A stretch of DNA of 64,000 nt from Pavona decussata (GCA_977016875.1 CDRNST010000054.1:620001-684000); one strand, 5' to 3'; shown: positions 4,518 to 12,757, counted from the first letter of the stretch. The notes: a model not told the origin generated them from the letters alone. A program made the numbers and translations.

Positions 4518-4844
4518 TAATGCACCAGTCAATGTAAATCCCCGCCCCCCCCAACCCGGGCAAAGGCGGGGACTTGGACTAATAGGGTGGAGAAAGTAAG
4601 TAAATGTTCCCGCCCCCGGGGCAATATTTTCATGCAAATGCCCTCGATTGTCCCCGCCTACCAGGGAAAGTTTACGTTTAAAAAAGTCATATGGAGTGTT
4701 CTCGCTGCAACCATGTTGCACGAGTAAAACATGAAAAAAATACATTTGCACAAAACTTAAACTTTTTTTCCCAAAGGAAAATCATTGCGTTGTTTTATAC
4801 TCCTTCATGATGGCCACAGCAAAAACACTCAAAAGATAGTCAAC

Positions 4845-4992
4845 TTGGTCACAACAATAAACAGACTTTTATTTGATATCTCTCATGCAGCGTTTGGTCA
4901 CAAAAATAAACAGACTTCTATTTGATATCTCTCATGCAGCATTTGGTCACAAAAATAAACAGACTTTCATTTGATATCTCTCATGCAGCATT
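4845..4992. repeat. Tandem repeat, 3 x ~48 bp
   Basis: ttggtcacaaaaataaacagactt..atttgatatctctcatgcagc repeated three times in the 3' region of the element. Confidence 0.9.
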
Positions 4993-5259
4993 TCATTGTC
5001 TCTTCCAGGGAACTTCGCCACCTATGACAAAAGATTAAAATTTATATTAACACTGTGAAAAGCAGCTCTGTTAATGTACATGGTCACTGTGTTTGTTTGC
5101 ATATTCGCCACTTCTATTGAGACTGGATTGAATTTGCAAGACAAAACAAAAATTGACCTTAAAATTGGGTAGTGTTTTCCCACCCTCCCCTTTCCCTGTT
5201 AACAGTGCCTGCACGTCTACCTAAAGATACTGAAAAAGCATGAGCAAGTATCTGCCTAC

Positions 5260-5421
5260 CAGCACATTCAGGGCAATACCAGTCACCATCAGGAATAACA
5301 TCAAGAGCCACACAAACATAATGAAACCACTGATACTTGCACTTTTCATGATCACATGCGATCATGAAGTCATCATCGGATTGGCCACAGGGACAAAATC
5401 CAGTTGTTTTCTGCTGTGCTG
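5260..5421 (-). CDS. ING-type PHD finger exon spliced onto the transposase C-terminus
   Basis: FCPCGQSDDDFMIACDHEKCKYQWFHYVCVALDVIPDGDWYCPEC (C4HC3); donor G/gtaatt at 5642 and acceptor ttgcag/ at 5422 join in frame (phase 1). Confidence 0.8.
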
Positions 5422-5454
5422 CTGCAATGCAAGGGAAAAAATTACAATGTCCAT

Positions 5455-5580
5455 TGATCAATTTAATAAAACTTTTACACCTGTACATGTAATTTACAAG
5501 TATAGCTATTGTTTTCAACCTCTGAAACAATGGCTACACTTGTTAATCACACTTGTAAAAGGGTTTTGAAATTGACCCCA
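5455..5580. mobile_element. Short MITE in the transposase intron
   Basis: Imperfect inverted ends gatcaatttaataaaacttttacac / gtaaaagggttttgaaattgacc. Confidence 0.5.
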
Positions 5581-5625
5581 GCACTAGTATCTAAAAGGAA
5601 CATTTCAGTTCATAGATACTATAAT

Positions 5626-9760: not shown

Positions 9761-9825
<65 letters not shown>
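9761..9825. repeat. (TAA)n microsatellite
   Basis: About 21 TAA units. Confidence 0.98.
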
Positions 9826-9826
<1 letters not shown>

Positions 9827-10016
9827 GTCATGGTTCCATTGTTTCGCACCTTTGCGGCAGGACCAAGTGATAGCTGACTCCTCTGGATGCATATTGTTCT
9901 TTGGCCACCTATAAAACAATATATAATAACAAGATTACATCTTTGCATGAGAACTACAACACATCGATCACTATAAACATTTCAAAATTTGCAAACTGTA
10001 TCTAAACTTGTAAAAT

Positions 10017-10962
10017 CAGGGTTCGTACACTTTTTTGGAGTAAAAATTCAAGGACTTTTTAAGGACTTTCAAGGACACATTTTCCATTTTTCAAGGACTC
10101 CACACACTACAAAATCAAGCGATAATCCGCTGCTCAAGGTAGAAAGTGTGCCAACCAGAGAGGTAAAAGTCTATGTCTTTTTTAGTTCATCCACAACATT
10201 AGCAATTTTGGCCTCAAGGTCTTTGCGAGTCGTCTCCTTTTCTTTTGCAGTTCTCCTCAAACTATTTGACTTTGTAATCCACTCAAGTCTACCAATATCT
10301 TCTGCTTTCTGTGCAAACTCATCTGCCGATTTGACAAGACAATCAACATCAGCTTCTAAACGCCTTCTTTTCGTTTTGACTTGTAAGCGCCGACTCTCCC
10401 ATGCTCGAAATGTCAACATCCTTCATGCACACGATGCATCGTGCCTTGTGTTTGTCACCTTTGACTTCTTATAGCCACTCTTTGTACAGTGGGTTCTGAA
10501 GCCACAAGTCGCTGAAAACACACTTGCCCATTGTTGTAAATCGTTTACTCGTGAAACAACATGCAAATAAACAACTCCCACGCAAACAATGAAGCACTCG
10601 AAGCACATGGCTTTTCATGGAAAGAGCGAATAGTACAAAACATTTCATTGGCTCTTAGCGTTGCAGATATTGAACCAATCAGAGCAATGGATACAACCAA
10701 GAAGAGGAAAATGTATTCAATGTGCGTGGGGCGCTTGATGGAGGTTCGAAGAGGTGTAATGATCGTTTTTATTGTTGCTACTGTTCTGCAAATAGCATAT
10801 ATTTTCATAGTAGGCACTCTAGAATCTAGGATGGATGAAATTAGCTACCGATTTCAAGGACTTTCCAGGACTGACTGCAATTTTCAAGGACTTTTAAGGC
10901 CTTGAATTTTTATTTTGAAATTCAAGGACTTTCAAGGACTTTCAAGGCGTGTGCGAACCCTG
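10017..10962 (-). mobile_element. Internally deleted hAT-type element with a 6-bp TSD
   Basis: TIRs CAGGGTTCGTACAC / GTGTGCGAACCCTG; TAAAAT on both sides (10011-16, 10963-68); subterminal TTCAAGGACT repeats; transposase C-terminal remnant at 10171-10419 (SADEFAQKAE..KSNSLRRTAKEK). Confidence 0.85.
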
Positions 10963-11893
10963 TAAAATTCATAACAGGTATGTCCAATAAATACAATGTA
11001 GGCAGTATTTGAGTCATTTGAGTAAACCCCAATACAAATCAACTTGGTTGATGATTATTGAACAGTAGAATTAACTTTTGATACAAACATCTGCTCAGCT
11101 GATTAGTATTCATTAACTTTCCATACACATCTGTACTCATTGTTTCACTTCACAAGTACGATGAAATATTTGCGTTCGATCTGTATGGGCATTTACAGTG
11201 GCTCGCCTTTGGCTCACAATAGTAAACGCCCATACAGATCTCCAGCTCGTATTTTTACTACTACTTACTAAATAATATTTCTCTAATTTTAATGTGTACA
11301 TACCACTCTCGGAAACAACGTTGCTGGTTGTTGTTCTTTGTTTTGAAAGTGCACCTATTAAAAAGCAACTTTCAGGTTTACACAGAAAAGGCATGAAAAG
11401 TAGTAAAATATTACTAAGCCCCCCCCCCCCCCCCACCCCAATGTACATGTAGTTTTGTGACAAAAAAGAAAACCCCCAATTCTATTATTATTAACAGAGT
11501 TTTACATCCCTTGAGCCTTATTTTATAAAACAGGCTTCAGATCACCTGTTCCAATCCAGTGGATATAAAGTGTTTGTAGATAGGAAATACATAATTGAGT
11601 GGATAGATAATTATTCAGCATGGCTATAAATTTTAACATCCACCTGGGGCCAGATGGATATCAATTTTTTTTATATATCTGTACCTTTGTCAGATGTTTC
11701 ACCAGCAAAATTGGAAGAAAGCACTTTAGGACCTACAGAAAAAAAATCAACAAGTCAAGTATTAAACAAATTATAAAGAACCAAATACCTCCTCCTACTT
11801 TTAAATAGGAATTTATATATAGGCAAAATTATAAAACAAATGTTTTAGATATTAAATATAATTGAATCCATATTAATTTGAATAATAACCGAC

Positions 11894-12544
11894 CTGTTTC
11901 TTGCGGGGGTGTACATTGACTGGTGCATAATAAGCTATCTTCAGAACGGCCTTCCTGTAAAAAGTTCAAAATGGAAATATATTAAATACAAAAGGTTTCA
12001 TATATTATAAAGCTCAGTGATGTATAAAAGCAAAACAATTCATAACAGTCTTAATACCTTTTTCAGCAACCGAAGCTTTGCTCTGTTGTTTATAACTGCA
12101 GTAGTCTCTAAATCGATAAAATCGTCCCATTCGCGATCGTATTGCTGCACCAAAATGTCACATCCTACCAGTATATCAAATGCATGTTGTATTGGTGGTA
12201 AAGCCTCGCTGAGAGTTATTCCAGCTTTTTTTTTTTTTACTTTCACCAAACTCTACGAGGGCCTGCAGTAAAAAGTATAAGGTATTTGTCATCAGTTTTG
12301 TGTGAATGCATGATCAACCAAGCAAATAAAAACAGAGAACGGCAGATCACATGGCAACCAGACTCATACATATTTATAAAAAGCCCACATCGAAGGCCGG
12401 AAATACCGAAAGGATTTACATAAAAACAATCGTGTTACTTTCGTAAGTAATATTTTTGGCAATTAAGAGAAGGATGGCAAGCACGAAATAAGGATAAAAC
12501 AAGATTTCGAATGTCAACAGATTACTCACGTTTCTTTCCGCCAT
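11894..12544 (-). CDS. 5' exons of the upstream gene of the Zator-like element (MAERN / ALVEFG..ILVQQYDREWDDFIDLE..KK / EGRSEDS..), partly degenerate
   Basis: ATG at 12544 in aaaATGG context followed by a gtgagt donor; AG/GT-bounded exons at about 12058-12262 and 11894-11955; frameshift in an A-run in exon 2; further candidate exons near 11140-11355 and 9850-9908. Confidence 0.55.
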
Positions 12545-12757
12545 TTTGTAGTCTTCTAGGTCGGTCCCAGTCTCTTACGAGAGACTCCACTCCTCCTGCA
12601 AAAAATATTCCCCGGTCCGCATACCGAAGAAGCAAATCTCATCCAAAACCCCGTGTACCGGGGCACTGTTGATTGTCAAACGTTAACTTTGTCCCCGCTA
12701 AAGTCCCCGCATTGCCCGGGTTGGGGGGGCCGGGGATTTACATTGACTGGTGCATAA

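Follow-up and report, generated by a model that had tools for sequence, protein, structure and literature searches.

A probable Zator-superfamily transposon of Pavona decussata, its spliced upstream reading frame and a candidate -1 frameshift

The Zator superfamily of DNA transposons is defined by its relation to TP36/ISAzo13 and by 3-bp target duplications (PMC7386202, PMC10045372). In amphioxus (Branchiostoma), Zator-1 has terminal inverted repeats (TIRs) of 33 bp, and it duplicates TAA or TTA (PMC12905397). The superfamily is abundant in the fungal host Rhizophagus, and the Zator domains of Repbase were reported to have no similarity to Pfam (PMC5751038). Here we describe an element of 8,234 bp in a 64,000-nt stretch of Pavona decussata DNA (GCA_977016875.1 CDRNST010000054.1:620001-684000, hereafter the window), with coordinates counted from the start of the window. 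We hold with good confidence that it belongs to the Zator superfamily as a cut-and-paste DNA transposon of autonomous type, a eukaryotic relative of bacterial ISAzo13/TP36 within the IS630-Tc1-mariner group, and that its gene structure is the one given below.

Like the described Zator elements, it has TIRs of a few tens of bp, a 3-bp TAA/TTA duplication and a DDE transposase related to ISAzo13/TP36. It also shares with them a presence in animals and, judging by protein-language-model neighbours, in Mucoromycota fungi, to which Rhizophagus belongs. It differs from them in having no direct Pfam or NCBIfam match and in the length of its product, more than 1,100 residues (about 1,531 with the upstream open reading frame, ORF A). 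The upstream frame in -1 overlap, the six introns and a spliced PHD finger may also set it apart. The sequence-only reading contrasted its TG..CA ends and richer architecture with GG..CC ends and a single transposase gene in typical Zator elements, and took it for a distinct subgroup, which it may be. With bacterial ISAzo13/TP36 (PF07592, NF033519) it has in common 3-bp duplications (PMC10045372) and, via a bridging family, the order and spacing of the motifs DD..DGxxD/N..NxxE. The bacterial elements are short and have a single ORF, and their similarity to the protein of the window is profile-to-profile only, through that intermediate family.

Ends, target duplications and copies

The element occupies 4521-12754. 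Read directly, it starts with TGCACCAGTCAATGTAAATCCCC and carries the reverse complement of TGCACCAGTCAATGTAAATCCCC at the other end. An inverted-repeat scan returned arms of 59 nt (4512-4570 and 12705-12763) that are 88% complementary; the TIRs themselves are about 50 bp long, with the tip TGCACCAGTCAAT. The features of the two ends are as follows.

4518..4520, unstranded: left target-site duplication, TAA, matching the TAA at 12755-12757
4521..4570, plus strand: left TIR, with the tip TGCACCAGTCAAT, then a C-run, then a GC-rich stretch
4845..4993, unstranded: a subterminal 49-bp repeat, three times in tandem, within the 3' untranslated part, with the same shifted self-match in other copies
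12705..12754, minus strand: right TIR, inside the transcribed 5' exon
12755..12757, unstranded: right target-site duplication, TAA, by direct reading

The host assembly (602 Mb) was searched for further copies. Two other full copies, C49 (9,531 bp) and C58 (8,584 bp), are bounded by the same ends as the window copy, and a fifth family member, C287, is truncated. The remaining one, C31, is an internal-deletion copy of 1,140 bp (G000:C31:774038-775177; L014 339-1478), in which element positions 1-724 are joined to 7808-8234, between perfect ends and with a TAA duplication, and which thus represents a naturally occurring non-autonomous form. Identity to the window copy is 98.7-99.8% across these four. 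Complete TIRs and a TAA duplication had already been proposed from the sequence alone, and the same ends on the other copies agree with this.

As for the left/right flanks, they are TAA/TAA in the window, TTA/TTA at C58, TAA/TAA at C31 and TGA/TAA at C49. A sister family (three copies, on contigs C56, C58 and C436; about 53% protein identity) has the same 13-nt tip as the window family, with flanks TTA, TAA and TAA. In a third family (C42) the tip after TAA is TGCACCTATCAAT, a version of the window tip with 2 mismatches. Taken over the window family and these two sister families, 12 of the 13 terminal flanks read are TAA or TTA. Together these two words make up 4.1% of the trinucleotides of the window, so the flanks are far from chance. 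The duplication is of 3 bp, as in Zator, and the TTA flanks do not fit a 2-bp TA duplication. The window family moved recently, with copies about 99% identical, and it duplicates 3 bp at TWA (TAA or TTA).

Some further observations concern the ends. The 49-bp tandem repeats start about 325 bp inside the left end, where they may serve as subterminal binding sites or be no more than a simple minisatellite. The tip occurs a third time at 11903-11927, in coding exon 2: 24 nt, 92% identical to the right end, in the same orientation and followed by TAA. It is kept in all full-length copies, and the 827 bp that separate it from the true right end are present only in copies of this element. This internal copy may be left over from an extension of the end, or be a candidate internal transposase-binding site.

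Lastly, when contigs of public metagenomes were scanned for 14 bases of the TIR tip, the matches were mostly due to chance, with about 8 loci showing TWA and a TIR-like continuation and none with a transposase. On L071, L073, L092, L111, L134, L136 and L144, TWA is followed by the TGCACCAGTCAAT tip and then by a similar C-run and GC-rich continuation. L092 holds an inverted tip pair 466 bp apart, with flanks GTA and TTA. In all likelihood these contigs represent copies of related elements that came from host DNA.

The transposase and its superfamily

The minus-strand frame 5626-8652 runs for 1,008 codons without a stop and holds the motifs RDD (D579/D580), VDGATDERP (D681) and SFLNRVE (E725), which is the uninterrupted transposase that the sequence-only reading had described. 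Its two features are listed here.

5643..8778, minus strand: transposase frame (frame B), open from 8778, first ATG at 8406
6913-6915, 6610-6612 and 6478-6480, minus strand: catalytic codons D580, D681 and E725, in frame B

Frame B encodes a Cys/His-containing N-terminal domain, a coiled coil and an acidic linker, as well as a winged-helix-like region and the DDE core, and it also has a Cys cluster and a tail of helix-turn-helix-like type. The spacing from the second D to the E is 43 residues. A Cys cluster had been expected from the sequence, and C856, C861 and H863 are near-invariant in the family alignment. In the case of the homeodomain-like tail, also expected, the tail is present with weak Pfam matches in 5 of 23 family members.

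When the transposase and 22 homologues were compared with Pfam, NCBIfam and PDB sequences, no transposase family was matched. A word search with the transposase returned 37 relatives, and the named ones are cnidarian gene models annotated as “YNG2”, “uncharacterized” or “PHD-type domain-containing”. Among named homologues, those of two anthozoans, Exaiptasia and Paramuricea, are the closest.

The fold was examined in two AlphaFold models, one of the whole protein (predicted local distance difference test, pLDDT, 69) and one of residues 440-900 (pLDDT 76). In these models the core has the canonical topology beta1-beta2-beta3-alpha-beta4-alpha-beta5-alpha, in which strands span 573-580 and 675-680 and a helix spans 721-735. 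D580 stands at the end of beta1 and D681 comes after beta4, with E725 in the helix that follows. Structure comparison of the core-only model gave RNase H-like enzymes for all 31 chains at Z >= 5, and for the next eight as well. At the top are the Mos1 catalytic domain (Z 8.0, root-mean-square deviation 3.6 A, 166 of 201 residues) and PFV integrase (Z 8.0), followed by Metnase (Z 7.5) and Sleeping Beauty (Z 7.0). Foldseek with the full-length and core models was weak (E 0.009-0.04), with DDE enzymes in its top rows. Ahead of the core, a stretch of 100 residues is similar to winged-helix DNA-binding domains (Z about 4.7). By these models the core is an RNase H-like DDE domain, nearest to Mos1, and a DDE core is what had been proposed from the motifs.

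The Tc1/mariner transposases (Mos1, Metnase, Sleeping Beauty) are thus the best neighbours of the core, at Z 7.0-8.0 over 166-190 aligned residues, and they too have a helical DNA-binding-like region before it. They differ in their TA duplication, their length of about 340 residues and their single ORF, and sequence-level similarity to the window protein was not detected. Membership of Tc1/mariner was rejected on the 3-bp TWA duplication, the lack of a match to DDE_1, DDE_3 or Transposase_1 in Pfam, and the spacing of 43, which is not DD34-41E/D.

The placement in Zator comes from profiles. A search of the host genome with PF07592 gave no match to this element and a match to a shorter ORF on contig C175, with the motifs DGGPDW and NPIEH. 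Relatives of the C175 ORF from cnidarians, echinoderms and a nemertean were aligned (alignment A2, 18 members). Eight of these members match PF07592 (best 1.6e-6) and 11 match NF033519, the NCBIfam “ISAzo13 family transposase” (best 2.1e-7). The profile of the window transposase family (A1) was then compared with A2 by hhalign, with a probability of 97%, E 7.6e-11 and 393 columns, at an identity of about 9%. The two profiles align in register, RDD with DD, VDGxxDE with DGGPDW and LNRVE with NPIE, and the Cys-rich region downstream aligns too. Protein-language-model neighbours, taken as a lead only, were Mucoromycota hypothetical proteins (0.95-0.97), with ISAzo13 as the best named family (0.84). 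A tblastn search for bacterial ISAzo13 sequences in plasmids gave no match.

We file the element under Zator because of the A1-A2 profile homology, the RNase H-like DDE fold and the 3-bp TWA duplication. The Zator/TP36 relationship suggested by the sequence-only reading is upheld by this chain of matches. Some findings weigh against the filing. None of the 23 window-family members matches PF07592 or NF033519 directly, and the link to Zator is therefore transitive, through one bridging family (A2). The fold matches, with Z about 8 and Foldseek E about 0.01, are middling, and Tc1/mariner and the integrases are not told apart by them. Finally, the full copy C49 has an imperfect duplication.

The element could also be read as a sister superfamily within the IS630-Tc1-mariner group, outside Zator proper, where the link to ISAzo13 would be deep ancestry and the TWA duplication inherited or convergent. 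The missing direct matches, the identity of about 9% to A2 and a transposase about three times as long as the bridging-family proteins, with different domains, would fit this. However, the hhalign match extends past the catalytic core into the Cys-rich region over its 393 columns, the D-to-E spacing of 43 residues is identical in A1 and A2, and the TAA/TTA duplication is the one published for Zator-1 (PMC12905397). A missing Pfam match is not distinctive either, since the Repbase Zator domains also lack Pfam similarity (PMC5751038). We regard a sister superfamily as improbable.

A PIF/Harbinger-type element, which duplicates TWA and has a second gene, would account for the TAA/TTA duplications and the two reading frames, but this is very remote, given that none of the 23 members matches the Harbinger DDE families (DDE_Tnp_4) in Pfam, that the profile match goes to ISAzo13-like proteins, that ORF A has only NCD2-like and coiled-coil signals and is not Myb/SANT-like, and that the structural neighbours are Mos1, Metnase and integrases.

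The C175 locus (about 2.105 and 2.237 Mb; L016 811-2151, L017) represents a second, shorter Zator-like family with a Cys-rich downstream ORF. It consists of two identical 3.2-kb stretches in opposite orientation, in which element ends were looked for and not found.

One spliced transcript and two overlapping frames

Contigs of four public runs (X1, X2, X9 and X19, the last a DNA run) were placed on 6755-12754. X1 and X2 provide long minus-strand contigs with five joints, all GT..AG in good consensus, and none of these joints is found in X19. The features read from these contigs are given below.

12058-12754, minus strand: exon 1, from the X1/X2 contigs; the contig runs on for 148 nt
12058..12292, minus strand: coding part of exon 1, ATG 12292-12290, encoding a small N-terminal domain (..ILVQQYDREWDDFIDL..); frame broken at 12226-12231 in the window copy
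11894..11954, minus strand: exon 2 (61 nt), from RNA contigs; holds the internal tip copy
11685..11732, minus strand: exon 3 (48 nt), from RNA contigs; the upstream intron is retained in the X2 contig
11304..11354, minus strand: exon 4 (51 nt), from RNA contigs
9909..11303, minus strand: intron (1,395 nt), from an RNA joint; filled with fragments of unrelated older repeats
9850..9908, minus strand: exon 5 (59 nt), from RNA contigs
9516..9849, minus strand: GT..AG intron; joint in the X1 and X2 contigs, absent from X19
8715..9515, minus strand: 3' part of ORF A in the large exon, with an NCD2-like stretch, a coiled coil and an acidic/Ser-rich tail
8718..8724, minus strand: candidate -1 frameshift site U UUU UUA, with the ORF A stop TAG (8717-8715) directly after

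The large exon begins at 9515 and, in the RNA contigs, continues without a joint or indel to at least 6755; it is an exon of 3.9 kb. Together with the five small exons its start forms ORF A, of 419 codons, which ends at the TAG of 8717-8715 as read from C49, C58 and the contigs of X1, X2, X9 and X19 (the frame of the joined exons was counted in script only). The separate multi-exon accessory gene proposed from the sequence alone is not what the RNA contigs show, which is one spliced transcript. Homologues of ORF A lie directly upstream of the transposase frame at no fewer than eight paralogous loci.

Two observations on the transcript stand apart. The spliced X1 contig extends 148 nt past the right terminal repeat (12755 onward); this may be a transcript that started outside an element copy (read-through), or a contig joining the flank of another copy. 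As for the 9909-11303 intron, its repeats belong to at least two other families, with dozens of copies elsewhere at 70-90% identity, and it also holds a short cluster of TTCAAGGACT-type repeats at 10853-10950. A separate gene inside this 1.4-kb intron was rejected, as its ORFs belong to the unrelated older repeats.

The last codons of ORF A read ACT TTT TTA TAG. Relative to ORF A, frame B is shifted by -1, so that U UUU UUA sits as a heptamer in the correct register of ORF A, immediately before the stop. Frame B has no ATG before 8406 (M83), which is 82 codons into the region conserved among homologues. A homopolymer assembly error was rejected, as the three genomic copies all have the T6 run and it recurs in contigs from three independent runs (X1, X2, X19); the contigs of X1 and X2 are indel-free and continuous across 8720. 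A splice acceptor at the run was rejected as well, with frame A coding up to it and the RNA contigs unspliced there.

The overlap was compared across five paralogous families of about 50% protein identity. In all five, frame A stays open as far as a T5-6 run, and the runs of the four sister families are TTTTTTG, TTTTTTA, TTTTTTA and TTTTTAA. The frame A stop lies 0-4 codons from the run, and frame B opens 2-19 codons before it with no nearby ATG, again in 5/5. Downstream hairpins, 5-8 nt after the heptamer, were found in three families, with -26.5 kcal/mol (z -5.4), -20.8 kcal/mol (z -3.3) and -18.4 kcal/mol. In a distant relative, P0037, both parts are in one continuous frame, with FF at the junction.

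We lean towards a conserved -1 programmed frameshift that would join ORF A to the transposase, because the same -1 overlap is kept in five families at about 50% identity. A literature search on frameshifting returned no paper on Zator. The closest described systems are the OrfA-OrfAB arrangement of IS3/IS1 and retroviral gag-pol, with which the element shares overlapping 0 and -1 frames, a downstream frame without its own start and, as predicted here, an upstream product made alone by default. Several members of the present family share the downstream hairpins of these systems, and the slippery heptamer U UUU UUA is identical to that of human immunodeficiency virus 1 (HIV-1) gag-pol. The present element is unlike them in being an intron-containing eukaryotic DNA transposon, in that its frameshift is deduced from comparison, and in that ORF A is no recognisable helix-turn-helix protein.

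Some points weaken the case for a frameshift in this element. The downstream structure of the window family is weak (-6.2 kcal/mol, z -1.2), and assembled contigs cannot reveal rare slipped transcripts. X1 and X2 were called RNA by guess, a label for which the spliced joints argue. As for the state of the copies, every full copy of this assembly carries some defect. The window copy is the only one to keep the transposase frame open, and it is 5 nt shorter at 12226-12231 than C49, C58 and the contigs of X1, X2, X9 and X19, with a longer A/T run there, so that the ATG of ORF A at 12292-12290 falls out of frame. C58 is interrupted by an in-frame stop and carries an insertion of about 350 bp, and C49 has frame breaks as well as an insertion of 1.3 kb. 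The contigs of the public runs show that the longer exon 1 is transcribed in other samples.

The two frames could also be expressed without ribosomal slippage, either through slippage of RNA polymerase on T6, giving a minority of U7, or as separate products with an internal start at ATG 8406. One extra T would fuse the frames, and such rare variants would be invisible in assembled contigs; the weak structure of the window family points the same way. For separate initiation, gene predictors start the homologues at frame-B ATGs. Yet U UUU UUA/G is kept in the frame A register in 4/5 families, with strong hairpins at 5-8 nt in three, and an ATG close to where frame B begins is lacking in every family, although the first 80 or so residues of frame B are conserved among homologues. 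A T6 run is also short for efficient slippage of polymerase II. Expression by either of these routes is in our view unlikely, with the ribosomal frameshift somewhat preferred.

Much less probable again is that the overlap is a product of decay, all copies being dead relics and the conserved T-run with its AG being either a hot spot of mutation or a splice acceptor. The defects of the full copies, and the acceptor-like T-run and AG in all five families, are in line with it. Against this, frame A stays open, and conserved, as far as the site itself, which makes the upstream sequence coding and not intronic, and the RNA contigs are unspliced there. Independent decay would not hit the same spot in five families at about 50% identity that keep frames of 1,110-1,134 codons.

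The PHD exon, accessory modules and a possible mode of action

Just before the stop of the transposase frame there is a donor, G|GTAATT, at 5643/5642. The two features that follow are these.

5422..5642, minus strand: predicted phase 1 intron, GT 5642-5641 and AG 5423-5422, from homologous gene models
5159..5421, minus strand: last exon, with an ING-type PHD finger; acceptor TGCAG|C at 5422/5421, stop 5161-5159

The PHD exon matches Pfam PF00628 with 24.2 bits (cut-off 24) and E 3.3e-5, and the same spliced finger ends the Exaiptasia RefSeq model P0002 (aa, amino acids, 950-1001) and the Paramuricea model P0009. A second PHD exon downstream was looked for and not found. Judging from the splice sites and the homologous gene models, the exon would also be used in Pavona decussata; the RNA placement covered 6755-12754 only. 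The long multi-domain architecture ending in a PHD finger, as first described from the sequence, is therefore retained, with PF00628 at threshold and the homologous models in agreement. In the literature searched, no paper ties Zator to a PHD finger.

The NCD2-like domain of that description is present in ORF A as a stretch with a sub-threshold Pfam match (E 0.0011), and the nearest language-model cluster is an NCD2-containing family (0.90). Next, the exon-1 peptide had no match in Pfam or PDB searches. In the sister family C42, the corresponding 5' region (L051 6768-7013) has an exon that encodes CIDE-N (PF02017, 39.3 bits, E 6.9e-10), with an NCD2-like stretch further downstream (E 0.012). 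BLASTP of the exon-1 peptide against this CIDE-N exon gave no alignment.

These parts could work together as follows. A single minus-strand transcript would start from the right end, with ORF A encoded by the five small exons and the start of the 3.9-kb exon. Most ribosomes would make ORF A alone, with its small N-terminal domain, NCD2-like stretch and coiled coil. A minority would slip at U UUU UUA and produce, at low frequency, a fusion of ORF A, transposase and PHD finger of about 1,531 residues. The DDE transposase (D580, D681, E725) presumably binds the conserved TGCACCAGTCAAT tips, and would excise the element and insert it at TWA with a 3-bp stagger. Through the ING-type PHD finger of the last exon the enzyme could be held at H3K4-methylated chromatin; as an added chromatin reader, the finger recalls the chromodomain integrases.

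We are evenly divided on the wider proposal, namely that a cnidarian Zator-type lineage makes its transposase only as an OrfA fusion, through a conserved -1 frameshift, with NCD2-like, PHD and (in a sister family) CIDE-N modules that could steer integration to H3K4-methylated chromatin.

To our knowledge, Zator is among the least studied superfamilies of DNA transposons, and we know of no transposase structure, expression mechanism or targeting rule for it. The present lineage offers recent, near-identical copies with defined ends and a natural spliced transcript. Among eukaryotic cut-and-paste elements, two of its features are rare or undescribed, namely a conserved -1 frame overlap with the look of programmed frameshifting and the fusion of a histone-reader finger to the transposase. 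Several cnidarian gene models listed as uncharacterized PHD/YNG2-like proteins are explained as transposon genes. If the proposal is true, frameshift-controlled dosage of a transposase would extend from bacteria and retroelements to animal DNA transposons, and the lineage would provide a candidate chromatin-guided, integrase-like enzyme.

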